A stretch of 32,884 bases of DNA from Octopus bimaculoides (GCF_001194135.2 NC_069001.1:19759580-19792463), one strand, 5' to 3'. Positions 2,075 to 31,509 are shown, numbered from the stretch's first letter. Numbers and translations are program-made. The notes: generated by a model not told the origin, from the sequence alone.

Positions 2075-3935
2075 AATGTCGGTTGACACATCTAAGAAAA
2101 ATAAAAGAGCATCAATTTCTTTGGAGACCAAGATCAATATTTTGCATCGCCTTCGTGAGGGTGAAAGTAAGCTTTCTGCCTGAACGAAGCTACGATTAGA
2201 ACGATCAAGAGGATTCATGCTGCCATTAGATCTGTAGCCTCTGGAACAAAATTATCTGCAAAGTCGTTGTCAAGGGACATGACTCAAGAAAAAATGGAGA
2301 AAGCTCTAATAATATAGATAAAAGAAAATTTTAAAAAAAAGGATACCAGTAGATGGTAAAACCACAAAACAGATGGTATTACGATTTTACAAGAAGATTA
2401 ATGACCTGGAGTGCGTTACATCTGTCTTATGATAAAAAGAATGAATTTGCTGCAAGTTCGGGATGGCTTACGAAGGACACGCACTGCATAATATCAAAAT
2501 AAGAGGTAAAATTTCATCTGTAGATAAGACTGCTGCTGAAGAATTTCTTCCAAAACTAACCAAAATAATTGAAGAAGTCGGTTACATTTCAGACCAAGTT
2601 TTCAACGCAGATGAAACTGGTCTCTTTTGGAAAAAATTGCCTAACAGAGAAAAGTTCTTGTTATGTAGCAACGCTTCAGGAGATTGTTTGTTAAAACCGA
2701 TCGATTGTTTGTTAATTAATCGATCAGTTCATTGGCGAGCCAATAAAAAATCATGGATGACAGTAGAAATATTTACTGAATGGTTTAACAACTGCTTCGT
2801 TTCTGAAGTAAGAAGACATAAGATATATTATGAATGAACTAGAAAAAGATGATACACTTTCAATCTTTAAAGCATGGAAAAAATTTACTATAATTAATTG
2901 TGTTAATGATGCTGCCCTGGTTTTATCCAAATTAAAGCCATCCACCTTAAATGCATGTTAGAGATCACTTTGGCTAAAAAGCCTAAAAATCTCGTATCTA
3001 ATACCAACACGAACGAATTACATTCTATCATCACTTTGTCACATCAGATTGACAGAGAAGATTTTGAAGAATTAACAATTGACAAAGCTCCTAATGAAGA
3101 ACGAATTATAGTGAGTATTTCAGAGAATGTATATAATTCCACGTTAGTTTATAGTAGTGATGATGAAGAAGAGGTTCCACTATCTGCAAGTACAATTCTA
3201 GAAGGACTCCAAATAGCCAATAAACTTGGAAATAATTTTCTTACAAATAATAACGTAAAAGCTGAGACATGGCGAACAACAGTTAAGTCAAATAAGTAAA
3301 TACAATCATTCATCAACAGATGCTTACGTAGTATATTTAAAATTAGATGGCCCAAACACATAAGCAATATGGAGCTATGACAAAGAACAAATCAAGTTTC
3401 GATTAGGGAGCAAATCTTTAAGAAAAAGTGGAAGTGGATTGGTAGCACAATTAGAAAAGACACACCAAATGTAGCGAAAAGTGCTTTACAGTGGAATCCA
3501 GATGGATAAAGAAAGAGGGGTAGGTTTAAGAACTCGTGGCGTAGATTAAAACAAAAGGAACTAGAGAAAGGGGAACATTCATGGCAGAGTATAAGTACAG
3601 AAGCGAAAAATTATGCGACATGGAATTCAATTATAAGTGGCCTATACTCCGCGTTGGAGGGTTAAAGGCAAGAAAAAAAATAACAATGTTGAACGAGCTG
3701 TGCAATTCCAACGTGATTTGAAAATGATTATGCACGTTATGAAGAATCATATAAAAAACTAATAAAAACAAAATCACAGCGTCTGATAACCGAATTCGTA
3801 TTCAAAACAAGTGAAACAAAAGAAACCCAATATGTTAATTTTATTCAAGATGCACATGAAGATATATTGCAATTAAATGTTTCCGATGACGAGAGTGATT
3901 TTGCGCCACCGAAAAACAACAGAAAGCGGGCACGT
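2075..3935 (+). mobile_element. Degenerate Tigger/pogo (CENP-B-like, DDE_1) transposase, interrupted by an RTE fragment
   Basis: N-terminal KRASISLETKINILHRL HTH-like start; DQVFNADETGLFWKKLP; KSWMTVEIFTEWFNNCF; C-terminal NVERAVQFQRDL...KSQRLITEFVF resumes after 3680. Multiple stops and frameshifts. Confidence 0.85.
3257..3680 (+). mobile_element. 5'-truncated RTE-clade LINE (ORF2 C-terminus plus A-rich tail)
   Basis: Reads AETW...FINRCLRSIFKIRWP...KWKWIGSTIRK...ALQWNPDG*RKRGR..SWRR, the characteristic RTE ORF2 end, followed by AAGAAAAAAAA. Confidence 0.85.
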
Positions 3936-4489
3936 TTATATATATATATAAGCATAGATACATGTATGTATGTGTGTGTGTATATAGATTGATAGATAGA
4001 TAAATAGATAGGTAACTTTCTTTATTGGCCACACAGGGCTGAACATAGAAGTGACAAATACAAAGTAGAGTTTTTTTTTTTCGGGGAGTCGAAAACAAAT
4101 AAAAATAAAAATAGGGAAAACGATCAAAAAGGGATCAAAATCGTTTGGGATANNNNNNNNNNNNNNNNNNNNNNNNNNNNNNNNNNNNNNNNNNNNNNNN
4201 NNNNNNNNNNNNNNNNNNNNNNNNNNNNNNNNNNNNNNNNNNNNNNNNNNNNNNNNNNNNNNNNNNNNNNNNNNNNNNNNNNNNNNNNNNNNNNNNNNNN
4301 NNNNNNNNNNNNNNNNNNNNNNNNNNNNNNNNNNNNNNGACCACTCATGACTAGCTAGCGCGGGTGCGCGTTCGGGACCACTCTGCTTTAGTAGTACCTA
4401 TATATATATATATATATATATATAAGCATAGATACATGTATGTATGTGTGTGTGTATATAGATTGATAGATAGATAAATAGATAGGTAA

Positions 4490-6590
4490 CTTTCTTTATT
4501 GGCCACACAGGGCTGAACATAGAAGTGACAAATACAAAGTAGAGTTTTTTTTTTTCGGGGAGTCGAAAACAAATAAAAATAAAAATAGGGAAAACGATCA
4601 AAAAGGGATCAAAATCGTTTGGGATATCCAAAAGTCGAAATAGTACAAAAAGTTCCCAAAAGTGGGAAGTAAATCCGTGGAAAGAAAAACCTACGAAAAG
4701 ACCACGGTAACCTCGGGCAGTAATGTCATACAATAACACATTTACAAGTATGTAACTCTCATTCTTCCTTTGTTTTTTTTTATGGTTTATAGGATTATGT
4801 TCAAGGTGGCTCCGCCATTCACACGTGCCATCCTTGCTACATTCACCCATCTTTTGTTGAAGCATTCGCTAGACAAAACTTCCCTCTCTACTTTCACCTT
4901 CCTTTTCAAGTGATACTTGAAGTTGATGAGTGAGTAACCAGAGAGGAAAGTGTTTGTCTCTAGTCCTTTCAGACGCGTGAAGCACACACATTCTTTCGCC
5001 ATAACCACAAGTACGATAATAATGGCTCTTCCTTCCCGTTTGAAGGAAGGAGGCGCGACAATATTCACGATAGACCGACTTGTCCCACATGTGACAGCAG
5101 TCGTTCGACATAAGCCCATAGGTCGGAAATGGTTAGACACTGCACGAGTGCGTGCAGAACGGTTTCGTCGCTCTGACCGCATCTCGGGCAGGTCAGCCAG
5201 GTGTTTTTCGAGCCATACCTATAGAGCTTATTCCAGACGGGTAGCGCTTCTCGATAGCACTGCAAGGCCAGGGATCTCTGGAAGTTGTCCATAGGTCTCG
5301 GCCCGAAAGTCGTCTTGAACAGGCGGGTCAGGTATTCCTCGTCGATGCCCAGGTTCGCCCCGAGATCATCGTCGTACCTCCCCTCCATTAATCCCATATA
5401 GAATGCTTTGGTTGTAATGCAGTCGCTCAAGGTCGACCCGGGACGGCATAGTTGCTGGAGAGAAACGTGACACCCTCGGTGCCATTCGCCTTTCCTCGGC
5501 CTCTTCTTGATCCACGACTGCAGCTCGGCCATGGAGACGAGCTGCGAAAAAGCGCGCTGCATAAACGGCGACTACACCTGTCTACGCATCATCAACCACG
5601 GCATGCCCAGCCCTCCTTTTAGAGGGTGTTGGCAGCAAACCGATCGTCTGACCATCGGAGCACTTCCTTTCCAAAGGAAGTGGAAGAGGATGCGTTTCAG
5701 TTTGGTGAGGGTAGGGTCGGGACAAGGAACGACGGTCAGGTGGTAGTAGATGACGGACGCGATGTACACATTCGCCACCTCCGTCCGACCTTTTAGGGAC
5801 AACTTTCTCTCGGCCAATTGCCGGGAGAGAGTGGCCACCCTACTTGTTATCTCGTCCCAGTTCTTCTCCGCTTGGATGTCCGGACCAAATCAGACGCCGA
5901 GCAACTCGACCGGAGGCGCTGCTGGACGGCATGAGCTTGCATCTTCAGGTGCTGAGCCGCAAACCCACTAACTTTTCCCGGTTGATAGTCTTTCAGTATC
6001 CCGCCGACCAGCTCGATGTGCACGTGGCTAGACACTATGACGGTGACATCGTCCGCGTATGTGGACACGCTCATCCCGCACCCCAGTTCTCGCGGGATTC
6101 CCTTCAGCGTCGCCAGCTTCTGTAGTAGTGGCTTGAGAGTTAATACGTACAGAAGTGACGAAAGGGGGCATCCCTGACAGACCGAACGTGCGATGTCGAA
6201 AGGTCTCGATAGATGCCCGTTCACGCGAATTACCGAACGGATGCCTCTGTACAAGGCAGTCATCCAGCCGCGGAAGACAGGACCGAATCCGGCTGTTATG
6301 AGGACAGCCTCCAAGTATCTATGGCCTATCATATCGAAAGCTTTGGATTGATCCAAATTGATCAGGGCCCTACCCATACTAGGTTCTTTAACTATCCTGT
6401 CTACGATGTAGCGCATCAGATGGAGGTTGTCATAGATGCTCCGGCCCAGCACGGCGCACGTTTGCGCCTTGTCGACCAGTTTCTCGATGACAAGCGCCAA
6501 CCTCTTGGCCAAAATTTTCAAATCTGCATTGAGCAGAGTGATGAGCCTAAAGTTATCTATTACGTCCCCCTTGTTTGGAAGAAGATTCTT
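4490..6590 (-). mobile_element. 5'-truncated Tx1-like LINE: RT, C-terminal zinc finger and 3'UTR (pseudogenised ORF2)
   Basis: NFRLITLLNADLKILAKRL, NLDQSKAFD, QGCPLSSLLY, YADDVT, CPRCGQSDETVLHALVQC; ends AGCCCTGTGTGGCCAATAAAGAAA. Confidence 0.93.
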
Positions 6591-7169: not shown

Positions 7170-7280
7170 ACAGCTACAGGCATGGATAGGCACTTTGAGC
7201 AAATGTCTTCTACTATAGCGTCAACCAAAGCCCTTTGAGTGGATTTGGTAGACGGAAATTGAAAGAAGCCCACCATATAG
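7170..7280 (+). mobile_element. Internal fragment of the same tRNA-SINE family as 8847-9235
   Basis: TGTCTTCTACTATAGC...GAGTGGATTTGGTAGACGGAAATTGAAAGAAGCC matches 8900-8985. Confidence 0.8.
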
Positions 7281-7345
7281 TATGTATCTATGTATGCATG
7301 TGCGTATGTATCTGGCTCAGTAGGAATGTAGATATGTATGTGTAA

Positions 7346-7633: not shown

Positions 7634-8084
7634 TGAGAAAGTTGGTATGTGAAAGCACGTGGTTGGATGTATAAAAGATAAACAAGAGTGAAAAAACTAC
7701 AGAAGGCTTGTGTTACATGGTTAAAGTATATATTTAAATTGTTCTGTCAGAAAAATGTTACAAAATTTTNNNNNNNNNNTGTATTTGGAGAAATAACCGG
7801 TTTCGTGTTGTCTTTTCAAATTTCTCTACTTGTATCGTAACATGTCTTCGCTCCCGTGTGTAAAAAAGAGTTCTAGATAGGGGGAGGTAATCAGGGATTT
7901 CTTCCGGTATAAGGGAGATAATCGAAATGTAAGAGGTGGTAGATTTTGATTAATTTACCATGGTTTGGTTTAGAAGGAATAGTATGTTAGGTTTTGTTCT
8001 ATATTTTTTCCTCTCAGTGAGGTGAATTTCCTTATTTAAAAGTATTAGCAATGGTGAAGTTTGGGTTTATATTTTTGAATGAAG

Positions 8085-8846
8085 AAGGTTTCCAAGCGGC
8101 ACAGGAGATGGGGGGATTTTGCTCTACCCCCATGTGCTCGCCAGCGTAGGTCCCTGCTCCCGTAGCCTCTAAAAGAAAGAGGAAAAAGAGGAGCAGAGGA
8201 CAGTCGGTGGATGCCCCTGTGCCGCAGACTGAATCGCTGGCGGGATGTGTGCCACCAGTAGAAAAGTGTGCCGCTGACGGAGCCGCTTGAGGCCCCTTCC
8301 CGTGAGGAGGAGGAGTTTGTCCTCCTTTATCACTGGAGAGGGCCTGTAAAAGAATTCTTGGACGGACTGTGCGACCGATAACGTAAGTACTCGGATTGCA
8401 CAGCCAGTCCAGTATGGCCTCCGCAGGTGATTGCGGAGGTCGTACAATATGAGCTTTTGTCAAAGGTCGCCATGACCTTTGACAGGAATGAATTTACATT
8501 CTTCTTCACGGGCCCCGACTTGTCGGTGCAAAGTTGTCTGCAAGCGGCAAGTCAACTTGCTTGGGGGCACCGATGAAGTGGATTGAATTGAACCTTGAAA
8601 CATTAATTGTGTTTATATTGATTGTGTTTAATATTAATATTAATTGTGTTTATTATTGAACTTATTGAACAATGTTTTCGAGGGGTTATCGGTCGGCGGG
8701 CGCCGGTTCCCTCCCATTTTTATTTTCTACTTTCTTTATCACCTTCATCTCATCAATGTCTGTGTCCAGCCCGCAGCTACTTTATGTCTGTCTGTTCTTG
8801 TTTGTCCCCTCTTTGTAAGGCCTAAATGGCCAATCTAAATGAAATA
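8085..8846 (+). mobile_element. 3' part of an ORF1-only Tx1-derived element (copy C), ending at the SINE target site
   Basis: + strand reads SKRKRKK...GPVKEFLDGLCDR*...WPPQVIAEV, homologous to GPVEKYLDGLLDR...WPPQVAVEV at 11384-11752 (-). 8668-8707 is identical to the reverse complement of 11292-11331. Confidence 0.8.
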
Positions 8847-9235
8847 AAGTAGCTTGCTTACCAGCTACATGGTTCCGGGTTCATTCCCATTGCGTGGCAC
8901 CTTGGGCAAGTGTCTTCTACTATAGCCTCGGGCCGACCAAAGCCTTGTGAGTGGATTTGGTAGATGGAAACTGAAAGAAGCCTGTCGTATATATATGTAT
9001 ATATATGTATGTGTATGTATATGTTTGTGTGTCTGTGTTTGTCCCCCAACATCGCTTGACAACCGATGGTGGTGTGTTTACGTCCCCGTAACATTAGCGG
9101 TTCGGCAAAAGAGACCGATAGAATAAGTACTAGGCTTACAAAGAATAAGCCCTTGGGTCGATCTGCTCGACTAAAGACGGTGCTCCAGCATGGCCGCAGT
9201 CAAATGACTGAAACAAGTAAAAGAGTAAAAGAGTA
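8847..9235 (+). mobile_element. tRNA-derived SINE lacking its first ~25 nt (B box, body, internal TA/TG microsatellite, GAGTAAAA tail)
   Basis: Begins AAGTAGCTTGCTTACC...GGTTCCGGGTTCATTCCC (B-box-like) and ends GTAAAAGAGTAAAAGAG. The missing head is present at 12996-13030. Confidence 0.85.
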
Positions 9236-9714
9236 TATACACATACTAAACCATCAATATATATATATATATATATACATCAAAATACACAGATGGATGT
9301 ACACAGACTACATACATATATATGTAAGACGTAAATATGTGTATTTGTGTGTATATTCTTATGCTCCAAATATACACTTTACCTGTCATTATACCGAATC
9401 CTGTTTTATTGCATTATTTCTTTTATCTTACTTCCATTGTACTATTTCTAAGCATTTTTAATTATCATTATAATTTACCATACGCTCTTTATTATTATCA
9501 TATTATATTTTTCCTGATTTATATAATTTTACCAATTCCATCTTTATTATTATCCAAATTCCTTTTTATAACCCCACCCTTTTTATTATAACCCCCTTTT
9601 TCCACTTAAATTTTTATCTATTATCATCTCTCACTTACTATTATCACTTTCCTTTCATATAATGGCTTATGGTATGCTATTGATTGTATACTTCCTTATT
9701 TATTTAACACGATG

Positions 9715-11167
9715 ATTACCATCCTTATTCCTACCCTGGGTGCAGTTCTTTTTGATGTGACCAGGTTCCAGGCATTGGTGACACTTGGGGGGGGGGGCGT
9801 CCCTCAAGTATCACCGGGTACCTGGCCCCGGCCATCACCAAAAATTCAGGGAATATTAGGTCACCGGCCGACTGGGTCCAAAGGGTCAGAACTGCTTTTG
9901 ACCCAACCCAATCGGTCGCGGCTTCCACCCTGCCACCAAGGAACTTGGTTCCACTGCCACCCAGACCTCTACGAATGGTCTGTTCGATCCATTCGGACCG
10001 AACTCCGGGCAGCAGCCCACATACCCAAACCCTCATTATTTTCTTCCCACAATATNNNNNNNNNNNNNNNNNNNNNNNNNNNNNNNNNNNNNNNNNNNNN
10101 NNNNNNNNNNNNNNNNNNNNNNNNNNNNNNNNNNNNNNNNNNNNNNNNNNNNNNNNNNNNNNNNNNNNNNNNNNNNTGTTGGCACTCCGTCGCTTACGAC
10201 GTCGAGGGTTTCAGTTGATCCGATCAACGGAACAGCCTGCTCGTGAAATTAACGTGCAAGTGGCTGAGCACTCCACAGACGTGTGTACCCTTAACGTAGT
10301 GCTCGGGGATATTCAGCGTGACACAGTGTGACAAGGCTGACCCTTTGAATTACAGGCACAACAGAAACAGGAAGAAAGAGTGAGAGAAAGTTGTGGTGAA
10401 AGAGTACAGCAGGATTCGCCACCATCCCCTGCCGAAGCCTCGTGGAGCTTTAGGTGTTTTCGCTCAATAAACACTTACAACGCCCGGTTTGGGAATCGAA
10501 ACCGCGATCTTAAGACCACGAGTCATTGCACCTCCACAATCAGTAAAGATAGAACAGCAGAAAGTTCGAAACAAAGAATTTAATCGAATAGAAAAAAAAG
10601 GAAGGAAGGAAGAATAAAAAAAATAAAAACAGTCCAAAGCACAGCAACTTCGATCTTCCGGCCAACTAGTATATCCACAGGAACACAGCAACCGGAGCAA
10701 AGGGTCACAAATTACACCAACAAAAATTGGTAGAAGAAATTCCACAATACAATCTTCCGGCCACCAGTATTCCAGGTGAAATAGCAGGAACACAAAAAAA
10801 TCCTTCACAAATTGTTAGAATTTTCAAAATTTCACAAAAACAACAATTCTCGCAATTAAGTGAGACACAAAATTTTTTCACAAAAAGTTCTCAGTCCGCC
10901 GTTATGGTGACTCGAATACGCCCACCAATAACGACGAACGAGAAACACAATTTTGCTTACTGAGTGAGCAACATCTTAAATTCGCCGAAAGCAGAGGAAA
11001 CTGCCCCAGAGCTGGGCGAAATTTACTGAAAAAAAATTAAAACACAGTAAATTACATCCATCTCAAAAAACAATTACATCTACCTCGGCTGACTTCACAA
11101 ATTTTCAATTTAGGACGTGCAACTTCGTGGAACTGTAAGAAGCAACTGAACTCCGGAACCGGAAGTT
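9715..11167 (-). mobile_element. Tx1-derived element copy B: 5' end, 5'UTR and ORF1 to the CCHC knuckle; contains a gap and a SINE
   Basis: Starts AACTTCCGGTTCCGGAGTTCAGTTGCT like copy A; 5'UTR similar to 12700-12995; ORF1 RVWVCGLLP...YPVILEGRPP then CHQCLEPGHIKKNC. Confidence 0.85.
10177..10535 (-). mobile_element. tRNA-derived SINE of a second family, inserted in copy B
   Basis: Minus strand has B-box-like GGTTTCGATTCCC near 10495-10505, and the sequence is unrelated to the surrounding ORF1 element. Confidence 0.7.
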
Positions 11168-11179
11168 AGCAAGCTACTT

Positions 11180-12995
11180 AATTTCATTGAAATTATCCAC
11201 AAGGGCTGTACATAGAGTAGTAGCTGCGGGCTGGACAAAGACATTAATGTGATGAGGATGATAACGAAAGGTGAATAAAAATGAGAGAGGCACCGGCGCC
11301 CGCCGACCGATAACCCCTCGAAAACATTGTTAAATACAAATCCAATAAAAGTCAAAAGTTCAATGAAAGTTCTTTTTAAAGATCTAATCTTCCTCGCCAT
11401 CACTGGATCTCGCACAGGCAGGCCCCGAATGACGTAAGTAAAATCCTCTTTTTGACAGGACCTCCATGACTTCACTATGATTTAAAACCTCCACAGCCAC
11501 CTGTGGAGGCCAACATGGATGGTCTATACATACCGAGTCGAAACGCTCTCGGTCTAATAGGCCATCCAGATACTTTTCAACGGGCCCTCCCTTGGGGTAA
11601 CAGAAGATATACTCCGTTTCCTCATCACCAGGAGGGACCGCAACCTGCTCTGTCAGTGGCGCAAATCCCATTGACAGAGCCTCCCGATCCATCTCCCGTT
11701 TCTCCTTTTTCTTTTTTTTACTGGTTGTGGGGGTTGGGGCATCCTTCGGCACACCCGAGATGTCCTCCTCCTCTCCCGCAACCTCTATTTCTCCTGGTGA
11801 GCAACTACATTTTCTTTTTTCCTCTGCTCCGGGGCCTTACCTCGGCCCTTGGGGCAGTTCGTTTTTAAATGGCCGGATTCAAGGCACTTGTGACATTTGG
11901 GAGGACGTCCCTCAAGAATTACTGGGTACCTTGACCCAGCCATCCTTAAAAAGTCCGGAAACACCAGACTAGCAATCGACTGGGACCAGAGAGTCAACAC
12001 CGATTTTGACCCCTCCCAGTCAATTGCTGGCAAAAATTTTATATTGACGAGCTTGGTTCCGGTGCCGCCTAGACCCCGGTGGTAAGAATCCCCTATCTAC
12101 TCGGGTTTTATTTCAGGTGGCAACCCGCAGACCCAATCCCTCGTTATTTTTTGTCCACAATATGTGGGCAGAAATAAAATTTCTTTGCCCTCAATGGACC
12201 CACTCGCAAATTTGCGAGCTTCACTCAGGGAGTCAAAAAGCAACCACACGGTTGCGTATTTGACTCCCCTTAAAATATATTTAAAGTTTGTATTAAATTT
12301 TTTAAGTTCTTTTTCAATAGTGGTTTGAGGAAAGACAGTGACGCTATCCAACACCTTTGAGTAGGTTTGGAGCGTCACTGTTCTTTCGTCCAGTTCTTTC
12401 AACCACTGCTTGGGTGGGCACAATTCCCACTCCAAGACAGTGTTTATATTTTGAGGTGCCATGTCCGTTTAAGAAAAATAAGAGTTCAAAATAAATTTTA
12501 AAACAGTTCTAAGGGAAAAAATATCACAAAAATTAAAAGGATGGAAGAAAAAAACTAAACAAAAGGAAGAGACAGAATAGAAATAGATAGTAAAAATAAA
12601 AAGTCACAGACACTGAATCTTCCATATGGTACTCCAAATAGGTGCTCCGAGTAGGTACTTCAAACGTTTTCGGCTAAAAATGCCAAACGAAAAAAAAATC
12701 TTCACAGCTGTAGTGGAGCGAACACGCCCACCACAGACAGCAAACACGCAATTTTGTTCGTAATGAACACACATAAAAACTCGCCAGAGGCAAGCGAAAA
12801 TGCCACAGAGCTGGACAACAGTCTACTGAAAAATAAATAACAAGCAATAAATTGTTGCCCAGCTGAGCAACAAAAACGACTTACCCTGGCGAATTCTTCA
12901 AATTGTTCTTTTTTCTTTTTTTTTTTGGACAGAGCCAAAACTCATGTTCACCTTGGTAAACTGTAGGCAGCAACTGAACACCGGAACCGGAAGTT
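11180..12995 (-). mobile_element. Full-length ORF1-only (HAL1-like) Tx1-derived element, copy A, about 1.8 kb
   Basis: 5'UTR of about 530 nt; ORF1 12462 to about 11384 (RRM-like region, CHKCLESGHLKTNC, Lys-rich tract, C-terminal domain; two stops and a frameshift); 3'UTR ending AGCCCTTGTGGATAAT. No EN or RT. AAGTAGCTTGCT on both sides. Confidence 0.88.
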
Positions 12996-13030
12996 AGCAA
13001 GCTACTTACCACACAGCCACTCCTGCACCT
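12996..13030 (-). mobile_element. 5' head (A-box region) of the tRNA-SINE, cut at the insertion site
   Basis: Minus strand reads AGGTGCAGGAGTGGCTGTGTGGTAAGTAGCTTGCT with A-box-like TGGCTGTGTGG, and overlaps the start of the SINE body at 8847 by AAGTAGCTTGCT. Confidence 0.8.
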
Positions 13031-13448
13031 ACTAATACTGTTGTAAAATATTTATGTAATGTAGCGTGAAAATTTTAATTTTAATTTTTAATGCATTAAT
13101 TGAATTATATTTCGCATATAATTATTTTCAATATGTATTTTGAATTCGCTCTTCGATTTAAGGTTTTCTTCGATTTTTATAACAGGATGAATTTATATCA
13201 AATTCATTTATTTTGTTTATTTTATTCATTGCATGTTTAAAACTTAATTGAAAGGACCAATGAAACAAATCCATATTTAAAGATGTATCCTTTAACTAGT
13301 TTTGATTATATCGTTATTTCTGTTCTATTTTAACAAAACTGTCCGACGAACGGGAACGTGAAACTCTGAGTAACAGCTTTTGTTACATTTCTGCTGCTTT
13401 AAAATAAAGCATATATATCAAAATAAGCAACAAGGATATCCAGAGGTA

Positions 13449-13536
13449 ATGCAGTACGATCGTTTCAAGCAACTCCATTTAATTGAACAATGCAATCATT
13501 ACATCAATTTAAATGCAGAGTAATCCTCAGCTGCAT
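13449..13536 (-). ncRNA. Candidate type I hammerhead ribozyme (left arm of the inverted repeat)
   Basis: ATGCAG-CTGAGGA-long stem II-GAAA-CGATCG-TA-CTGCAT; stem I is 6 perfect bp and stem III is palindromic. The stem II closing pair is U/U (non-canonical). Confidence 0.55.
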
Positions 13537-14112
13537 AAAGACATAGAATTAAATTAAATTGTGGTAAGATTTGGTATATACTGAAAAGTATTCAAAAAAA
13601 TTTTAATCCTTTTGTTATAATATTCTTCTTAATAATCTTCTGAATAACCCTAGATTTTAACTTTATACAATATGGCAATATTGTTTAAAATATTTAACTA
13701 TAGTACTCCATGACAAATTTTCTCCCTTTAATTGTCAGCTAACATCTTGAGTTATGATTGCTTTACCAAATCTCATTATATTACTTCAAATTAATCTTGA
13801 TGATTTTACGGTTATACCCACTATGATTTGTGTCGACTCCCTCATCCCCCTTCCTAACAGACACTGCTTCTTGTTCTTTGGTCTTAGATTTTGATATACA
13901 AAGATTTGATAAACAAGACTATAAATTAAAACACCCCAAAAAACAGTGCCAAGCTAGATTTCTAACTAGTCTTTCTTCCTGATACCTTAGTAGCTTCTAA
14001 GCTGAAATGAAGACAGCATGTTCTTTGTTTATCTCTTTACCTTCTTGGAGGTTTTAGGTAAAATTATACTAATGTGTCCATCTGTTTTAATTTAATTTAA
14101 TTCTATGTCTTT

Positions 14113-14200
14113 ATGCAGCTGAGGATTGCGCTGCATTTAAATTGATATAATGATTGCATTGTTCAATTAAATGGAGTTGCTTGAAACGATCGTACTGCGT
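14113..14200 (+). ncRNA. Candidate type I hammerhead ribozyme (right arm of the inverted repeat)
   Basis: CTGAGGA 14119-14125, GAAA 14183-14186, palindrome ACGATCGT 14186-14193, GUA triplet 14192-14194, stem I 14113-14118 with 14195-14200. Confidence 0.55.
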
Positions 14201-14707
14201 TACCTCTGGATATCCTTGTTGCTTATTTTGATTTTAATCACCTTATTTTGAAATTGTATGGATAATACCGTACTAAATTCTGGTGCCTCAACTTAAGTAG
14301 CTAATTCATCTAAATCTATCTGTCTATCTATCTACCTATCTACCTATATATATATNNNNNNNNNNNNNNNNNNNNNNNNNNNNNNNNNNNNNNNNNNNNN
14401 NNNNNNNNNNNNNNNNNNNNNNNNNNNNNNNNNNNNNNNNNNNNNNNNNNNNNNNNNNNNNNNNNNNNNNNNNNNNNNNNNNNNNNNNNNNNNNNNNNNN
14501 NNNNNNNNNNNNNNNNNNNNNNNNNNNNNNNNNNNNNNNNNNNNNNNNNNNNNNNNNNNNNNNNNNNNNNNNNNNNNNNNNNNNNNNNNNNNNNNNNNNN
14601 NNNNNNNNNNNNNNNNNNNNNNNNNNNNNNNNNNNNNNNNNNNNNNNNNNNNNNNNNNNNNNNNNNNNNNNNNNNNNNNNNNNNNNNNNNNNNNNNNNNN
14701 NNNNNNN

Positions 14708-17432: not shown

Positions 17433-17730
17433 CCTACATATATATACAGAATAAGCAACAAGATATCGAATAGTGATGGAGTAGGACCGTTTCAAGCGGC
17501 TCCTTTTAATTGAACAATGCAATCATTACATCAATTTAAATGCAGCTGCACAAATAAATAAATGCTCGAAATGAGGAGTAGATAGACAGCCGACAACTGA
17601 TGAAAGGTCGTTTCTCTGTGTTTACTTGTCCTGTTTTCTATTTTTTTCTCTCGTTGTTTGCGTATTTAACACATTTGTTTACGTATTTCATGTTGTTTGC
17701 ACAGTTAGTGACGTTCAGTACCAATAATAC

Positions 17731-18855: not shown

Positions 18856-20005
18856 GTAATCGTGCGGGTGTTAATCTGAAAAATTACAGATATGTGAAAA
18901 GTACCGACCCTGCCATCTATTATAACTTTTGTTGTTCTGTTTAATATATACATAGATTATGCCTCCAAAGAAGAGAGTTTGCTGGGGAAAGAAAGCAACC
19001 GGTTTAAAATGACAGCAACAGACTGTAGCAATTCACCACATTCCAGAAGCTACTTTGAACATAATGCAAAATGGTGCATCAACATCTACTGCCCAATCTG
19101 ATAGAATTCTGGCAGAACNNNNNNNNNNNNNNNNNNNNNNNNNNNNNNNNNNNNNNNNNNNNNNNNNNNNNNNNNNNNNNNNNNNNNNNNNNNNNNNNNN
19201 NNNNNNNNNNNNNNNNNNNNNNNNNNNNNNNNNNNNNNNNNNNNNNNNNNNNNNNNNNNNNNNNNNNNNNNNNNNNNNNNNNNNNNNNNNNNNNNNNNNN
19301 NNNNNNNNNNNNNNNNNNNNNNNNNNNNNNNNNNNNNNNNNNNNNNNNNNNNNNNNNNNNNNNNNNNNNNNNNNNNNNNNNNNNNNNNNNNNNNNNNNNN
19401 NNNNNNNNNNNNNNNNNNNNNNNNNNNNNNNNNNNNNNNNNNNNNNNNNNNNNNNNNNNNNNNNNNNNNNNNNNNNNNNNNNNNNNNNNNNNNNNNNNNN
19501 NNNNNNNNNNNNNNNNNNNNNNNNNNNNNNNNNNNNNNNNNNNNNNNNNNNNNNNNNNNNNNNNNNNNNNNNNNNNNNNNNNNNNNNNNNNNNNNNNNNN
19601 NNNNNNNNNNNNNNNNNNNNNNNNNNNNNNNNNNNNNNNNNNNNNNNNNNNNNNNNNNNNNNNNNNNNNNNNNNNNNNNNNNNNNNNNNNNNNNNNNNNN
19701 NNNNNNNNNNNNNNNNNNNNNNNNNNNNNNNNNNNNNNNNNNNNNNNNNNNNNNNNNNNNNNNNNNNNNNNNNNNNNNNNNNNNNNNNNNNNNNNNNNNN
19801 NNNNNNNNNNNNNNNNNNNNNNNNNNNNNNNNNNNNNNNNNNNNNNNNNNNNNNNNNNNNNNNNNNNNNNNNNNNNNNNNNNNNNNNNNNNNNNNNNNNN
19901 NNNNNNNNNNNNNNNNNNNNNNNNNNNNNNNNNNNNNNNNNNNNNNNNNNNNNNNNNNNNNNNNNNNNNNNNNNNNNNNNNNNNNNNNNNNCTCAAAACA
20001 ATATT

Positions 20006-20046
20006 TGTGTATCGCGATTTCCGGGTTATTTCCCTTCATCAGCACA
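20006..20046 (-). ncRNA. Minimal type I hammerhead ribozyme (Penelope type)
   Basis: TGTG-CTGATGA-A-GGG AAATAA CCC-G-GAAA-TCGCGA-TA-CACA. Canonical core, palindromic stem III (ATCGCGAT), 4-bp stem I, predicted cleavage between 20010 and 20009. Confidence 0.75.
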
Positions 20047-20074
20047 GAATAATTGTTCGGCTAGAGGTGAATTT

Positions 20075-22400
20075 TTTATTAGGATAATTAATATCGTACA
20101 TAGGGGGGACAAAACAGGACAATACAAACAATTATTGTTATTATGAGCTTGTATTATACTTAGTTTTTAAAAATATAGAATGATATATAATCAAAATTTG
20201 AATTTTCCTTTTTTTGTGGGATGGGATTAAACCTGATGGGCTGAAAAGCAACTATACCTTTTCCTTTTCTCATGAGGATTAAGCAGAGTCACTTGCACCC
20301 ACCTTTCTTACCAGAGCGTTCCACCTTTTCTCGGACTCACCTCGCGACAGGCATCTCCTCTCCAGCCCTATCTTGTTCTTGAGATGATATCTGAAGTATG
20401 TCAGCAAACCAGGGAGATGAAGGATCCTGTCACGAGTCCTTGCAATTTTGTCTTCCACACACGCTCTTTCAACACTGCACCTGAACAGAGAAAACATGCC
20501 TCACCTTCTTTTGAGAGTCCGGTTGGCGACACAATCTTTATTATAGACTCAGCTGATAGCTGTACTGTGCCTAGGTGTGACAACACGTGTTCAACGTACA
20601 TTATCGAGCATGAAAGCTTCCGGCACTGTACAAAAGTGTGCTGGACGGTTTATCCTCCAGCCCACATCTTGGACATGCCGTTGGCACTGACATTCCGTGC
20701 TTGGATAACTTATCGCGAACAGGCAAAGCGTTCCTGTAGCACTGCCATGTCAGAGAATTTCGGTAATTATTCAAATACTCCGGCCTGAAAGTTTTTTGGA
20801 ACAGGTTGGCAAGTTGGTTCTCGTCGAACCCCAGCGCCCCTCCTAGGACGTCATCATTTTAAAACTCTACCAGCCCTTTATACAAAACCGACATGGTATT
20901 CCCACTGCCGGCCTTGCTCGTCTTGTGGATTAGCACGAGTGCCTGTCGACACTCCTTTTGCCATTCTGTCAGATTACATCTTTTAAAAAAACCGGGTTTG
21001 AATCTCTCCAAAGAGACTGGTCGCGGAAAGAATTCCTCCGCCAGCGGAATCCACACCTTGTTACCTGGAGGTACCTGGAGGTAGCGCCAGAGATGTTTCA
21101 GCCTCAACGCATGCCTGCGCATCATTAGCCAGGGCATCCCTAACCCATCCTCTAACGGTTCCTGACAGCAGACGGAGCGCCTCACAAGTGGCTTTCCCCC
21201 TTTCCACATTAAGCGGAAGAGGAGGCGCTCGAACTTGTTTAGCCACGAATCGGGGCAAAGGACATCGGTTAGGTGGTAGGTGATTACAGATGCAAGAAAC
21301 ACCTGTACCACCTTTGCCCTTCTTTTCAGGGACAGAGTCCATCCGGACCAACTCCAGACTAGGGCCTCCATCCTGACTGCCACCTCGCTCCAATTCTTCT
21401 CGGTCTGGGAGTCCGGTCCAAACCAAATTCCAAGCAACTTAACAGGACCATCTTTCCAGTGACTCTCGACACTCGACGATATCGACTTGCTCCTCCAGGT
21501 GCCGAGGCGCAAGCCGATTAACTTGTCCTTGTTAACTTTTGCTTCTGCCACTACCTCGTATCCTTTGTTAGCGTCCTCTCCACAAGGATGATGGTGACGT
21601 CATCTGCATAAGCAGAGACCAATTTATCGCATCCGATTTCATTGGGGGTACGACCCAAATTCCCCAACTTCCGCAGTAATGGCTCAAGAGCCAACATGTA
21701 CAGAAGCGGTGACAGGGGACACCCTTGACGAACTGAGCGCTTGATCGAAAACGATTCAGACAGGATGCCATTTATCTGAACTGTGGATTTGATGCCGCTA
21801 TACATTGCGGAGATCCACCTACGGAAGACCGGGCCCAGCCCAGCCGCTTCGAGGACCGCCTCCAGGTACTGATGGTCTACCATATCAAACGCTTTACTTT
21901 GGTCTAAATGGACCAGTGCCCCACCTTTGCCGGTTAATTTACCCAACCTGTCTAAGATGCAGCGTATAAGGTGAAGATTGTCATGCATCAACCTGCCTGG
22001 AATGGCGCATGTCTGCGCCTTCCCTACAAGCTTCTCCACGACACGCATCAATCTTCTTGCTAACACCTTGGCCAAAATCTTTAACTCTACATTGAGTAGA
22101 ATTATGGGCCTGTAATTACTTTTAATGTCCCCCTTGCTCGGGTCCTTCTGGATCAGCGTCACCATTCCCCGACTCACAGAGCTGGGAATCCTCCCATTCT
22201 GTTGCCAGTTTGTGTAGACGTCTGCCAGCAGGTCCCCGAACAAGTCCGGCATGCTACGATAAAACTCATAGGGTAGACCATCCAACCCCGGCGACTTGTC
22301 CCCAGCGCACTTGGCCAACACCTCTTTGACCTCCACATGTGTAATCGGTCCTTCACAGCATTCTGACTAACGTGCCGAGAGTCGCGGCCCACCAGCGAGG
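20075..22400 (-). mobile_element. 5'-truncated Tx1-like LINE (RT, C-terminal domain, 3'UTR)
   Basis: KSPGLDGLPYEFY, NYRPIILLNVELKILAKVLARRL, HLDQSKAFD, RQGCPLSPLLY, AYADDVT. ORF2 stop at about 20279; 3'UTR ends TTGTCCCCCCTATGT...CCTAATAAAAAA. Confidence 0.95.
21551..22336 (-). pseudogene. Tx1 ORF2 reverse transcriptase domain (261-aa open stretch)
   Basis: RT motifs are in one frame; a frameshift follows YADD. Confidence 0.9.
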
Positions 22401-22419: not shown

Positions 22420-23565
22420 CACGCTCGAGCGTGGAAGAGAATGGTGGTTTCTTCCTAATTATCAGGGTAAAAAGCCAACGAAGATTAGGGTGGGAAGGAT
22501 CCAACCGACAATTGAGCCAGAATGGCCACTGGCAGCAATTTTTACTGCAGAAAATGAAGAAAACGAAACTGAGTTTTCTTATGATAACCAGAACCCAACA
22601 AGTAAATTGTTGGGGGTATGGTTTCGAGGTTATTATCACGGTAAGTCAAAGACTATATGAGACAATTCCGGAAACACTAGAACTGCTGAATGGAGACAAA
22701 CTGGATATAATGTTGGAGAGGAGACTTCCAAAGTGCTATGAATGTGGCGAAAGAGGACACATTAGAAGAAGGTGCCCGAAAATAACGGAAAACGTAGAAA
22801 TGGAAAGGCAAGACGGCGTGATGGATGGAAAGAAACAGACACAGGAAAAGGAACAAAAAGCCGAGTTTGTAGAAGTCAAGTCAAGGAAGGACTCATCGCC
22901 GAAAGTTGAACAAGGAAACAAATATAAATCACTGGAACAAGTGGGATCACCAAAGAAAGAGGATAAAAGCAGAACATCACTAAATAAACATACAGACTCG
23001 CAATCACACAAACAAACAGATTCACAGACTCGTAAACACACAGACATACATATACACGGAAGCATACTAGATAACACAGAGTTGCAGAAACCTAAAAGCA
23101 CAGACACACAAACACAACATGCAGACTTACAGTCACAAAAAACATGCAGACCCGCAGACAAATAAACACACAGACATACAGTCACAAAGAAACATAGAAA
23201 AACAGACGTGTGATCATGCAGAGTCACAAAAACGAAAAAGAACAGACATGCAGACACAAGAGGTGCACCGGAACAGAATATATTTGATAACATATCGGTC
23301 GACACAAAAAATAGAACTCAGCGCTCCAGTGGTGAACAATGAGGAAATTAAGAACAATATAAAATGGTAAGTAGAGATTTATTTTGAAAAGAACTGTTGA
23401 GGACTGTTGAAATAATTGAAATAACGTTACCACCCCGGAGCGGGGCTAGGGTGGCCGTCCCATCTTCATTGTATAATTTCACTATTCCATTCTTTCATGT
23501 GTTAAATGTGCCTGAATGTGTGTATTGTCTTATTCATGTTTAGCCCCTTGTGGGTAATAAAAAAA
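22420..23565 (+). mobile_element. 5'-truncated ORF1-only Tx1-derived element (family D, copy 1)
   Basis: LPKCYECGERGHIRRRCP knuckle and H/T/D/Q-rich repeats, then directly a 3'UTR ending AGCCCCTTGTGGGTAATAAA(A)n. No ORF2 sequence in between. Confidence 0.85.
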
Positions 23566-23574
23566 AATCATTAA

Positions 23575-25009
23575 AAAAATTCATAGTATATTCCATCCGG
23601 TACTTCATTTGTGTCAAATACCATTTTTCTGCATTCCGCGCTTTCTTTACAGTCTCTTATTATTTTCATTCTGTATTCTGGCACTAATGCGCCTAAAACC
23701 ATTCTTTCTATTTTCATTCCCTTCATGTCTATCACTTTTCTATCTTTCCATTGTACTAACTATTCCACCACATCCTTTTTTACGCCTTTCACTAAAGCAC
23801 AAACAAAACAAGTGGGAAGGGCGTTTTGCAATTTTTTTGTATGACAGCTGTTCTTTTTTGTGTCGGAGGGGAATACGTGGGTTTGGTGTCTGCAGGGGAG
23901 GGTGGGGTTGAGAGGGTATGTGTGGGATGGGTGCGGGCTGGGGTTCACTTAACCTGTCCTTTTCCCACTTCCTCTGTTTTCTCCCCGTATATTTCCATCC
24001 ATCCTCCTCATTTCTTTCTTCTATCATTTCTGGTTCCTTCTCTGCTCTTTCCTGGGTTGGCTTATTTTTCAGAGGGCAGTCGGCTCTAATGTAGCCTTGT
24101 TGACCACATCTATAGCAACGAAAGGATCTGCCTTCTACCCACACTTTCATCACTGTTTCTCCAATTGTCACCGTTTCCACGAGCAACTCCAAGTTTTCCA
24201 GCTTACTCTGTATTATTAGTTCCAAAATTCGACCGCATCAATTAGTGGCTTCCGTTTCTGTGGCTTGGAGTACCGTGACCTCTTTCTTGCTTCCTAGAAG
24301 CACAGCCGCCGCTACCCAAGCCACATCCATTTTATGGGTTGATTCCCTCCACTCTGACCTTGGACGTTCTTCTTCCAAGGTATATGGGTAGAAGGATTAC
24401 CCTTTCCGCTTTCATTGATTTTGTTGAGCTTTCCCTCGCTTTCAGCTTGTTCTTACGGCATCTCAACGGTGCTGTATTGGCTTACTCTGGCAAGATACGC
24501 TATGTTTTGCCAGATAGGCCTCAACGCCTTTTCAATTTCGTCCGTCTGTTTATTCTCTATCCTTTTCTCCTTGACAGGAGATTGTATACAATCTTCCTTT
24601 CTTCCATTTCCCTTATTATTTCTTGTGGTGGTGACAATTTCACATCACCACCTTCTTTTTTAGCATATTTTCATGATTCTTCAAATTTTTGAGGCTCACC
24701 CCCTCCTTGCCACTCCAGTTACTCTCGCAAAAGTTTTCTCCTTTATAGCTCTATCCATCTTCATTACAGCTTCTTCCAGCTCCTCTTCAGACGACGACAG
24801 TTCCGAATATGACACCTCCGACTCACTCACGTCCGAACAAGTTTCCGCCATCCTTCCTCAAACTGTTGAGGGACAGCTTCACAAAAAAAACAAAAAAAAA
24901 ACCCAGCTGCAACGCCGCTCACAAAATATTATAATAACAGACGAGACCACGTGGAACGAACTCACATAACCTTGGTAACGGCAAATTATCAATAAAAAGC
25001 GAAAAAAAA
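23575..25009 (-). mobile_element. Tx1-type element copy E: 5' head and degenerate ORF1
   Basis: Head GTTATGTGAGTTCGTTCC; EIEKALRPIWQNIAYLAR homologous to the ORF1 at 28371-29285; RCYRCGQQGYIRADC knuckle. Confidence 0.8.
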
Positions 25010-25299: not shown

Positions 25300-28200
25300 T
25301 TTCTTTATTGCCTACTAGGGGCCGACAAAGATGGGGACCACACAACCTGATTTGGGGTCAGATGTTCGATATGTAATTACAATAAAAATGAAGTTAAAAA
25401 TTAAAGCATATATGAACGAATGATTATACATTACAAAAAGCGAAATACGTTTGTAAGGTGCGGCTGGAGATAAAGCTGCCTGTCTTGACTCCTTTCATCC
25501 TTGTCTTCCACACCGCCTCTTTCGCTTCGCTATTGCTACTACGATGCGAAAGCAATTCTTACCTTCATTTGTTAAAAATCCAGGTGGGTCAATTTTTATG
25601 ATTAACTCAGCCGACAGCTGTACTCTCCATGTGCCGGACAACAGATGTTCCGCATAAGCCCACATTTCCGATACTTCTGGACACTGAACAATAGCGTGCG
25701 GGACGGTTTCTCAATCCCGCGTATACCATGTCTTGCAAGCTTATCCCAAACGGGCAAGGCACTTCTGTAACATTGCCAGGTCAAAGATTTTTGGAAATTA
25801 TCCAACGACCTCAACCCGAATGTACGAAGGAACAGGCTGTCAAGTTGAATATGCCAGAGACCAAGACTCTCCCCCAGGCCATCGTCACATTCAGCATCTA
25901 CTAATCCTCTATAGAAGAATGCTGTAGAATCCCCACCGCTGGTATTACCCAAGCGACGGAATAGCAAGAGGGCCTTACGGCACTCCGTATGCCATGCACT
26001 CAACCTCGATCTACGAAAGCACCAGTCTTCCCGTCCGCAAAAACTAGCGAACTCGGGTAACATCTGTCTTGCTAGCGGAGACCACACCCGTTCACCATCC
26101 AGGAGAATCCAGAGATGCCTCAACTTCAGCGCATGTCTGCGCATCATCAATCAAGGCATTCCTAATCCTCCTTTTAACGGTCTTTGGCAACAGATAGAGT
26201 GTCTCACAAGTGGCGGAAGAGCTGTCTCTCCAACTTGATTAACCACGAATTCGGGCAAGGAACGACGGTCAGGCGGTGGGTAATGACCGATGTGATAAAA
26301 ATATTAGCCACCTCCACCCCCACTTTCAGGGATAGCTACCGCCAAGACCAGGTTTTGACTATGGAGGACACCCTGCTCGAAACCTCATACCAGTTCTTCT
26401 CTACCTGGAGATCTGGTCCAAACCAGACCCCTAGCAACTTAATCGGTCCCTCTGTCCAGCGTACAACGACGCTATCTGAAGGCATCGACTTGCACCCCTC
26501 CCCCCAGGTGCCGAGTTGCTAGCCGACTGATTTTCCCCGGTTAATCTTTGCTCCTGCCACCGTCTCGTAAACCTCAATAGCCTTGCCTACTTCATGTAGG
26601 CGTGCCATTGTGGTCACGCTGATGGTGATGTCATCCGCAAAGGCTGAAACAAATTTCTCATATCCTGGCTCATATCCGAGCGTTTGATACAGGACGGCTT
26701 TGAGAGAAAACCGTTAATCCGAACTATCGAGTCAATGTTGTGATACAATTGAATGATCTATCTAAGAAAGCCAAGACCCAAGCCAAACTGCACAAGAACA
26801 GTCACCAGGTACCGATGGTCAACCCTATCGAAAGCTTTAGATTGGTCTAAACGTACCAATGCCCCACCTCTGCTAGATCTATCCCCAAACCTCTCTAAGG
26901 TATATCTCCACCTTATCTAAGGATAAGGTGGAGATTATCCTGAATGGTATATGTCTGTGCCCCACCCCCATCAGACCATCCGCGACACGCGTCAACCTTT
27001 TTGCTAATACCTTTGCCAAAATCTTCACATTTAACAGAGTGATGGGCCTGAAATTATCTAAACAGTCCCCCTTGTTCGGTTTCCATTCTGACCCACATCT
27101 CCACTCCTCGGCGTACATATCTGGGGATAAACCCATTCTGTTGCCAGTTCGCGTACACATTGGCTAGCAGGTGCCCGAACAAGTCTGGCATACACTTATA
27201 CAGCTCGTGGGGAAGACCTTCCAGTCCCGGCGACCTACTCATGCCGCAGTCAGCCATAGCCTCTATCACTTCCCCAGGCGTGATCGGCCATATTCTATGG
27301 TTCATTTTAAGGCGTACCACCATTTGTTATTAATGATGGTACCTGTTAACGCCCTCTGAATTAAATATTTAATTCGCTTTCTGTACTCCTCAATCGCCAA
27401 AAGGGACGTATTGAGTTTCCAGTACCCAGATCCCTGTCTATGCATCTTATCTACGTTCAGCTACAGGTAACCACCTTGTTACTGTAGCTGACTGGATAAA
27501 ACTGTGGACACTTAACTATATCTTATCTACCTTTCTAATCAAAATCCTATCTAAATATGATCGGGAAGACCCGTCGCTGTTTGACCATGTCCACAATGGA
27601 GCGTCTGGGTGTTCCAACCTATATAGGTCTGCCAGATGGAAATAGCTTAGCAGATCCCGAAAACCAGGGTTACACGTCCTATCCTTTCTCGAGCCAATAC
27701 AATCTACGCGCGCATCGCAGATTGTGTTTAAAGTCTCCTAACAGAATGCGACGTGGCTAGAAATTTACCTAGGTCACGAAAACATTCACTTTGTGGACTA
27801 ATAAGATTGGGTGCATTAACTGCAACCAGCCTGACTGTCTTGCCGCAACTGAAAGTCAAGTCCAGAACGATCAGCCCGCTTTCTGGATCAGAAAAAAAAA
27901 ATCAACTTTTTCTCTGAAATCCGGTTTCTTTTTAATAGGAACAACACCCCACTTCTACCTTCTACCTGACACGGAAAAACGTATTTCTCGTAGCCGTTCA
28001 GGAGGGGGAGAAGATCTCTTGGCTCTCTCAACCAGGTTTCTGTAGCAACAATTACATCTAAATCCCTGCGACCTGATGTCATTTAGGAAGCGTCCTTGTT
28101 TCCAGCTCGACATCAGGCCACGTACATTCAAACAACCAATGTGAATAGCCATAAAGTTGTCTTAGTTTTTTAATTTGAATTATCAGGTGGAGGAGGAGTT

Positions 28201-31437: not shown

Positions 31438-31480
31438 TGTGGGTATCGCGATTTCCGGGTTATTTCCCTTCATTAGCACA
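31438..31480 (-). ncRNA. Second copy of the minimal hammerhead, probably inactive
   Basis: Same block as 20006-20046, but the core is CTAATGA (G5 to A) and stem I is disrupted. Confidence 0.6.
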
Positions 31481-31509
31481 GAATAATTTGTTCGGCTAGA
31501 GGTGAATTC

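Follow-up and report, generated by a model that had tools for sequence, protein, structure and literature searches.

An ORF1-only retroelement family that probably inserts at a 12-bp site in the tRNA-like head of an octopus SINE

Results

We analyzed a stretch of 32,884 nucleotides of the Octopus bimaculoides genome (GCF_001194135.2 NC_069001.1:19759580-19792463), hereafter the window, in which positions 8,085 to 13,030 hold pieces of a retroelement of about 1.8 kb, termed copies A, B, and C, joined to parts of a short interspersed element (SINE). The retroelement has a single open reading frame (ORF), of the type found as the first ORF (ORF1) of long interspersed elements (LINEs). The element pieces and the SINE parts meet at exact copies of a 12-mer, AAGTAGCTTGCT, and the evidence detailed below makes it probable that the family inserts repeatedly at this one 12-bp site in the tRNA-like head of the SINE and duplicates it.

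Copy A is complete, with 1816 bp on the minus strand (12995-11180). It consists of a 5' untranslated region (UTR) of 533 nt (12995-12463), one broken ORF of ~360 codons (12462-11384), and a 3'UTR of 204 nt that lacks a poly(A) tail (11383-11180). The ORF is interrupted by a stop codon at 12099-12097 and a frameshift near 11790. A CCHC zinc knuckle is encoded at 11895-11854; its match to Pfam zf-CCHC has E 0.012 in A, which falls short of the curated cut-off, and exceeds the threshold in relatives. The knuckle is followed by a lysine-rich linker and then by a C-terminal domain (...EYIFCYPKGGPVEKYLDGL...), of which the segment YIFCYPKGGPVEKYL lies at 11611-11567. No reverse transcriptase or endonuclease was found in copy A. 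The termini of the element, AACTTCCGG... and ...AATGAAAT, are not inverted repeats, and there are no long terminal repeats.

The 12-mer has three exact copies in the window, at 12996-13007 and 11168-11179 on the minus strand and at 8847-8858 on the plus strand, and no additional match in the window when one mismatch is allowed. In 100 dinucleotide shuffles of the window the mean number of matches was 0.10, and none of the shuffles reached three. Each copy stands at a junction. On the minus strand, the first separates the 5' part of the SINE head (13008-13030, with the A-box-like TGGCTGTGTGG) from the 5' end of A, and reads GGAGTGGCTGTGTGGT, 12-mer, AACTTCCGGTTCCGGTGTTCAGTTGCT. The second, also read on the minus strand, is the sole sequence between the 3' end of A (...TTTCAATGAAATT) and the 5' end of B (AACTTCCGGTTCCGGAGTTCAGTTGCT), which makes A, 12-mer, and B a head-to-tail tandem with no SINE sequence in between. 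The third, on the plus strand, separates the 3' end of C (...TCTAAATGAAATA) from the SINE body (TACCAGCTACATGGTTCCGGGTTCA...). The first and the third are the copies of the target site that adjoin the SINE.

The ends of the element are delimited by comparing the copies. A and B can be aligned from the first base past the 12-mer, and their upstream flanks are unlike each other (SINE head for A, 3' end of A for B). In the same manner, the 3'UTRs of A and C can be aligned up to AATGAAAT, and what lies downstream is not the same (the 5' end of B for A, the SINE body for C). Five ends of the element are accessible, and the 12-mer is present at each of them (A 5', A 3', B 5', C 3', and the 5' end of a copy in Octopus sinensis described below). 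It occurs once in 63 kb of four other loci, at the predicted place, which is the 5' end of that same O. sinensis copy. Since A and B are 92% identical over 37 nt and only ~70% identical thereafter, their arrangement is not a tandem duplication; because two copies that are ~70% identical abut through a single 12-mer, the SINE pieces are unlikely to be fixed parts of the element. The original prediction, made from this DNA alone, held that the 12-mer marks three junctions at the ends of repeat copies, which the positions, the shuffles, and the alignments confirm. It also read the 12-mer as a target-site duplication (TSD) within the SINE head that is hit again after insertion, and this reading is supported by the A/B tandem and by the O. 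sinensis copy.

The SINE that provides the target is represented by the head piece given above and by a body at 8859-9240 on the plus strand. The latter is made up of what remains of the tRNA-like head, with the B box GGTTCCGGGTTCA, together with a CORE-like domain (CTTGGGCAAGTGTCTTCTAC...), a microsatellite, and a tail. As assembled, head and body are not one SINE copy, because the former is on the minus strand and the latter on the plus strand. When head, one 12-mer, and body are joined, ARAGORN folds a tRNA-like cloverleaf, at a relaxed threshold only, with the anticodon stem GTAAG/CTTAC and the loop TAGCTTG; when head and body are joined with zero 12-mers, it finds no cloverleaf. In this fold the 12-mer takes up the entire 7-nt anticodon loop together with the last 3 nt of one strand of the anticodon stem and 2 nt of the other, and it is placed between the A-box-like TGGCTGTGTGG and the B-box-like GGTTCCGGGTTCA. 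Scans of the whole window at Rfam gathering thresholds and with ARAGORN default settings gave no matches. As for the SINE's own target duplication, the flanks of head and body are AT-rich and have AGTAT alone in common. The SINE is probably OR1, a CORE-SINE described by Ohshima and Okada (1994), given its CORE-like motif. OR1 is listed as an octopus CORE-SINE (PMC4824008). Copies of the SINE body and tail are dispersed and occur both in the O. sinensis locus and elsewhere in the window. The latter copy (7189-7314, plus strand) is an older, headless fragment of the same SINE, with 79% identity over SINE positions 73-200; it has a deletion in the B-box region, is preceded by a (TG)n tract, and gives no evidence on the empty site.

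A third independent insertion was found in O. sinensis (CM016886.1, locus L001). Because this locus was retrieved by protein similarity alone (66% identity), it is a fair test of the prediction that the element follows a SINE head. Some 525 bp 5' of the start codon we find, in this order, GCATGGCTGTGTGGT, AAGTAGCTTGCT, and TCCTGTGCATGCG... The SINE head and the 12-mer are identical between the window and this locus at 25 of 25 positions, whereas the element sequence past the 12-mer can barely be aligned with A and the DNA farther upstream is unrelated. The 5' ends of the family comprise AACTTCCGGTTCCGGWGTTCAGTTGCT and a type seen in O. sinensis, TCCTGTGCATGCGTTGATTAGTTGC. In the MAFFT alignment, the first element bases of the O. 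sinensis copy fall on the last CT of the 12-mer, so that the junction is shifted by 2-4 nt (GCT|TCCTG). Such a shift is expected, as it matches the microhomology-mediated joining that is usual at the 5' junctions of LINEs. The copy ends ~130 bp past its stop codon, beside a TG/TA-rich tract, and offers no 3' junction. With this locus, the three independent insertions, which represent two species and no fewer than two subfamilies, all share these 12 bp as their site. The O. sinensis copy also includes an intact ORF of 281 codons (positions 10001-10846 of the locus), which is annotated as gene LOC115225585. Judging from the sequence, some copies of the family may still be expressed.

The remainder of the octopus tandem is more complex. 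Copy B begins with a 5'UTR (11167-10546, minus strand) whose first 37 nt are those that closely match A, the remainder being ~69% identical to A and nearer to the O. sinensis copy. At about the start codon, B is interrupted by an unrelated repeat of at least 369 bp (10545-10177, minus strand) with the tRNA-like B box GGTTTCGATTCCC, which runs into an assembly gap of 121 N (10056-10176). This repeat appears to lack a head of its own, its end falls in the gap, and we found no second copy of it in the sequences compared. On the other side of the gap, B resumes in the middle of its ORF (10055-9734, minus strand; A coordinates 833-1150) with its CCHC knuckle at 9783-9742, and homology ends just past the knuckle. 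The parts of B on both sides of the gap are collinear and on the same strand. A gap of 121 N leaves too little space for ~297 bp of the B ORF (A coordinates 534-830) and the end of the foreign repeat, so either the gap is longer than written or part of B has been deleted. The gap touches none of the three 12-mer junctions, all of which lie inside gap-free stretches (7780-10055 and 10177-14355).

Copy C (8085-8846, plus strand) contains the linker, the C-terminal domain (FVLLYHWRGPVKEFL at 8316-8360), and the 3'UTR. B is without a 3' end; C, for its part, lacks a 5' junction, with neither SINE head nor 12-mer on its 5' side. B stops at 9734 (A coordinate ~1150-1156), and the element part of C starts at 8085-8147 (A coordinate ~1176-1241); the two pieces are in opposite orientation, 1.65 kb apart. 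Their sequences lead us to favor the view that C is the inverted 3' half of B, by an inversion of 8085-9733 that may be either real or a misassembly within that contig piece. It explains the lack of both the 5' part and the 5' target copy in C better than a 5' truncation does, and an independent C would have to be truncated within ~25-90 nt of the break in B, for which the odds are a few per cent. If 8085-9733 is turned back, the order on the minus strand becomes head, 12-mer, A, 12-mer, B, 12-mer, SINE body, and flank, the latter being the AT-rich non-repeat DNA that now extends from the SINE tail to the broken end of B (9241-9733) and that would be the 3' flank of the SINE. This is exactly the outcome expected from two successive insertions into one SINE copy. 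Because C is probably half of B, the independent insertions in the window number two rather than three, which together with the O. sinensis copy gives a total of three. The three junctions of the original prediction stand, and its three insertions are probably two.

The only proteins that a profile search recovers for the ORF of the element are CCHC proteins of cephalopods. A word-based protein search with the A ORF returned one relative, the intact 281-residue O. sinensis protein of LOC115225585 (66% identity). A profile search of 1.84 billion representatives gave 80 proteins, the best of which are from O. sinensis, Octopus vulgaris, O. bimaculoides, and Argonauta hians, and all of which are of the same CCHC type and without reverse transcriptase. 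A profile of the distant relatives yields only the O. sinensis protein and a 75-aa fragment, and an exact look-up of the first ORF piece of A gave no record. A profile search of the PDB with the ORF gave zinc knuckles only. Distant similarity also links the A ORF to CCHC ORFs among the window's LINE fragments and to the ORF1 located ahead of the Exo_endo_phos and RVT_1 domains of an autonomous LINE (L002, described below; 25% identity over 157 residues by tblastn, with E 2e-8 against a small database; probability 90% in hhalign). We read it as a homologue of LINE ORF1 on account of these two similarities.

In both A and the O. sinensis copy, the ORF1-type gene continues directly into the C-terminal domain, without room for an ORF2, and in C this domain is directly followed by the 3'UTR. 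For these reasons the ORF1-only layout looks like the normal form of the family, as far as can be read from sequences that cover it in A, up to the start of the C-terminal domain in O. sinensis, and in pieces in the B/C lineage. The family is non-autonomous. As it has neither reverse transcriptase nor APE-type endonuclease, the element is not itself the carrier of a sequence-specific enzyme, and on this point the original prediction is not supported.

The identity between A and C is much higher in the 3'UTR (86%) than in the coding part (~69%). The 3'UTR includes a block of 33 nt, TTTTCGAGGGGTTATCGGTCGGCGGGCGCCGGT, that is identical in A (11292-11324, minus strand) and C (8675-8707, plus strand) and for which a GC-rich hairpin is predicted from these two sequences. 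We found no further carrier of this block in the window, in the O. sinensis locus, or in the two loci with the autonomous LINE (L002 and L003). Neither the block nor the intact SINE target had a match in contigs from metagenomes, prokaryote genomes, and viruses, collections that hold no octopus DNA. At the other end of the element, the 5' ends of A and B hold TTCCGG twice (ACTTCCGGTTCCGG), which we take to resemble ETS-type sites of an internal promoter. They also contain GGTTCCGG(T/A)GTTCA (12974-12988 and 11146-11160, minus strand), which is similar to the B-box region GGTTCCGGGTTCA of the SINE (8871-8883, plus strand). That region lies 12 nt past the target, and insertion of the element again puts a B-box-like motif at a similar distance from the A box. 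The motif is not kept in the O. sinensis subfamily and may be due to chance or be a trace of the origin of the element.

The nearest autonomous relative that we identified is a LINE present in two loci of ENA ERZ21867824 (L002 7189-12969 and L003 9417-13222), with the layout ORF1(CCHC)-APE-RT-zf-RVT, RT being the reverse transcriptase, and 89% identity between the loci. Its 3' end, ...GAAATAAA, has no poly(A). One of its copies is truncated at the 5' side and has a TSD of 12 bp, ATTAGCGAAGTG. It shares with the octopus element the knuckle context of ORF1 (...VEGRxPxCxxCGxxGH...), the 3' end without poly(A), and the length of the TSD, so that the 12-bp duplication and the poly(A)-less end fit the lineage. 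It differs by the presence of APE, RT, and zf-RVT, by insertion that is not site-specific, and by an ORF1 that is only ~25% identical. Neither the octopus SINE nor the ORF1-only element is present in these two loci.

The window is rich in other repeats. It holds a nest of LINE fragments (5065-6521, 20859-22336, 25602-27287, 23740-24225, and 28371-29285 on the minus strand; 22431-23165 and 29497-30054 on the plus strand), which include ORFs for reverse transcriptase (RVT_1, zf-RVT) and several CCHC ORFs of the ORF1 type. None of them carries the 3'UTR block of the element, and the reverse transcriptase fragments, in which RVT_1 and zf-RVT are the only domains, do not have its ends. A search with a reverse transcriptase query from the window gave almost exclusively contigs of a non-octopus ENA assembly. 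The ORF at 29497-30054 is by eye very similar to a 75-residue O. bimaculoides protein (P0087). Some regions are duplicated within the window: 29495-30640 is 83-86% identical to 22579-23561, and 31431-32220 is 77% identical to 19997-20792. An ORF at 2463-2837 (plus strand) matches DDE_1, of pogo/Tigger-type transposases, and marks a fragment of a DNA transposon. Adjoining the SINE head is a pair of inverted repeats of 164 bp (13398-13560, minus strand, and 14089-14252, plus strand), 93% identical and ~530 bp apart, with a third copy at 17437-17546 (85-87%), i.e., a short dispersed repeat. Finally, the segments 3937-4152 and 4411-4626 are identical over 216 bp (100%) on either side of the gap 4153-4338, and look like duplicated contig ends, an assembly artefact.

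Discussion

The junctions suggest how the element might reach its site. An autonomous LINE, so far unseen, would supply a site-specific endonuclease and a reverse transcriptase and insert the element by target-primed reverse transcription. The bottom strand would be nicked at 5'-AGCAAGCTACTT^ACCACACAGCC-3' (CTACTT^ACCACA), with priming on the 3' end of the element, whose 3'UTR hairpin is a candidate recognition site of the mobilizing reverse transcriptase and likely the one used by the partner. A top-strand nick at 5'-AAGTAGCTTGCT^TACCAGC-3' (TTGCT^TACC), 12 bp from the bottom nick, would then lead to duplication of the 12-mer. Every insertion would regenerate the site on both sides, so that a second element could land next to the first and form a tandem around one 12-mer. 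In the window, one SINE copy would have been hit twice, by members of the subfamilies of A and B, before the inversion or misassembly of 8085-9733. An alternative dispenses with a sibling bearing an ORF2: a non-specific LINE, for instance a relative of the L002 type, would be borrowed by the element, the endonuclease of a dedicated partner would have no role, and homing would come from the element's own ORF1 protein or C-terminal domain, or from base pairing of the target with read-through RNA that includes SINE sequence. Target choice would then reside in a non-autonomous retroelement. We hold this to be unlikely. Two further ideas were considered and set aside. Runs of four or more T, the first of which is at position 56 in A and at 98 in B, make it unlikely that RNA polymerase III reads through the element from the split SINE promoter. 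A chimera made by template switching, of the U6/L1 type, cannot account for the 3' junction with the SINE body.

Several observations weigh against a family that targets this site. The independent insertions sampled number three (A, B/C, and the O. sinensis copy), in two genomes. The 54 kb of octopus DNA examined contain no intact SINE head, i.e., no empty site, and the single copy of the 12-mer in the empty target is deduced from a fold that ARAGORN gives at a relaxed threshold. No partner with a reverse transcriptase or an endonuclease that shares the ends of the element was found in the window or in loci L001-L003. The autonomous LINE of L002 and L003 has unrelated flanks at its two copies and is not site-specific. 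As to the protein, the AlphaFold model of the O. sinensis homologue (P0001), from an alignment of four rows, has a pLDDT of 35, and no RRM-like N-terminal fold was obtained. The breakpoints of B and C are located with a precision of ~25-90 nt only, as the linker is poorly conserved there, and if C were independent after all, the SINE head and 12-mer expected on its 5' side are missing.

These points have to be weighed against what other explanations would require. The strongest competitor is a preference rather than strict specificity, where the element, or its partner LINE, inserts widely with a bias for this SINE or for AT-rich hairpin-like sites. The small sample lends itself to this explanation, since two of the three events are within one SINE copy and the bias may be overstated; so do the unrelated insertion sites of the nearest autonomous relative and the fact that the Tx1-mobilized SINEU-1 and SINEU-2 show a target association of only 13-23% (PMC4494074). 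We nevertheless regard it as rather unlikely, as all three independent events, from two species and two or more subfamilies, fall on the same 12 bp, with a shift of 2-4 nt at a single 5' junction. Less probable still is a composite element, a larger retroposon with a 1.8-kb insert that would amplify as a unit. Its fixed ends would be the SINE head and the SINE body, each with a 12-mer, and the 12-mer would not be a target duplication. Such ends would fit the SINE head found on the 5' sides of both A and the O. sinensis copy, the only ones outside a tandem, and the SINE body found at C, the only 3' flank outside a tandem, and they would also fit the lack of an empty site in the octopus DNA examined. 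They do not fit the A/B junction, at which B has no head, A has no body, and the 12-mer stands alone. The original prediction had itself named fixed SINE pieces as the case that would overturn it, and this junction opposes that case. To produce it from a composite, A would need a 3' truncation, which is very rare in retroposons, and B a 5' truncation that falls by coincidence exactly at the first base of the 12-mer. Moreover, head and 12-mer are fully identical between the two species next to element sequence that can barely be aligned, which fits fresh hits on SINEs and not modules that evolve together.

Two other explanations seem to us very improbable, to about the same degree. Target-specific DNA transposons of the Dada type occupy fixed sites in tRNA genes, have no terminal inverted repeats (TIRs), and form tandems (PMC3706591), all of which recalls the octopus element. 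However, the TSD here is of 12 bp and not of 6-7, the sole gene codes for a CCHC protein of the LINE ORF1 type and not for a DDE transposase, the 3' end and the TSD length agree with those of the related LINE, and the conserved part is a hairpin in the 3'UTR rather than sub-terminal inverted repeats. The last explanation is an artefact, either of assembly, by misjoining of repeat copies, or of recombination, by ectopic exchange between SINE copies. The scaffold is indeed rich in gaps, one of which is flanked by the exact 216-bp duplication, and the arrangement of B and C requires an inversion that could be a misassembly. Yet all three 12-mer junctions are free of gaps, 12 shared bases are expected to be too few for a misjoin of k-mers in a de Bruijn assembly, and the same 5' junction is present in the independent assembly of another species, O. 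sinensis.

Known targets of site-specific LINE-type elements are rRNA, snRNA, and tRNA loci, microsatellites, telomeres, and a few transposons. Target-specific non-LTR (long terminal repeat) retrotransposons are well described, and their targets already include transposons (PMC5035012). The sequence-specific LINEs of the Tx1 group include Tx1L, which targets Tx1D in Xenopus, Keno, which targets U2 snRNA, and Mutsu, which targets 5S rRNA (PMC4494074, PMC3706591). The original prediction cited Dewa as a further case, in tRNA arrays; this is correct for the arrays, and the site is in the spacer of tRNA-Leu arrays rather than within a tRNA (PMC3706591). Like these four, which are LINEs of the APE type whose choice of target is attributed to the endonuclease, the octopus family homes to a multicopy sequence. 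Unlike it, they are autonomous, with an ORF2, and none is reported on a SINE in the literature searched. Membership in the Tx1 clade is defined by the phylogeny of the reverse transcriptase (PMC4494074), and for the octopus family the link to this clade is an analogy.

The closest precedent is in crocodilians, where Tx1-Mar and SINEU-3 insert at a fixed site in a Mariner element with a TSD of 16 bp (Kojima 2015, PMC4494074), and where tandem insertions of SINEU-3 that sandwich a TSD have been read as sequential insertions (PMC4494074). The octopus family shares the fixed site in another transposon family, the long TSD (12 bp here), and the tandems. The target there is Mariner and here the tRNA-like head of a SINE. 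In addition, SINEU-3 is non-coding with a head derived from snRNA, whereas the octopus family keeps an ORF1-type gene, and Tx1-Mar partners have been identified for SINEU-3, whereas none was found for the octopus family in the sequences examined.

Non-autonomous LINEs that are ORF1-only or internally deleted, such as HAL1, are a second point of comparison. They also comprise derivatives of L1 and Vingi, and Bov-A (PMC4494074). These elements, like the octopus family, keep both ends of the LINE, have lost ORF2, and are presumably mobilized in trans. They are not site-specific, in contrast to the octopus family, which keeps both its target and its layout in at least two subfamilies and two species. 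Dada elements share the fixed position in tRNA-type sequences, the lack of TIRs, and the tandem insertions, and differ by their DDE transposase and TSDs of 6-7 bp, where the octopus family codes for a LINE-type protein and makes a TSD of 12 bp (PMC3706591). We found no report of a LINE-type element that targets a SINE in the literature searched, nor did we find there the 12-mer in an octopus context or the sequence of this SINE. What would be new is the SINE as a target, which is not described in that literature; site-specific LINE-type insertion as a mechanism is already known.

Conclusions

Site-specific LINE-type elements are natural models for programmable RNA-templated insertion. If the conclusion drawn here is true, homing to the anticodon loop of an abundant SINE adds a retroposon to the known targets and provides a short, defined target of 12 bp with which to find and test the responsible endonuclease. 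Insertions that split SINEs, and the nested tandem arrays that they form, are likely to be miscalled by repeat annotators. Should the ORF1-only layout be the rule and no dedicated partner exist, what sets the target becomes a testable question. For the SINE-rich genomes of cephalopods, the finding would imply a parasite chain of three levels, made of a LINE, an ORF1-only rider, and a SINE host.

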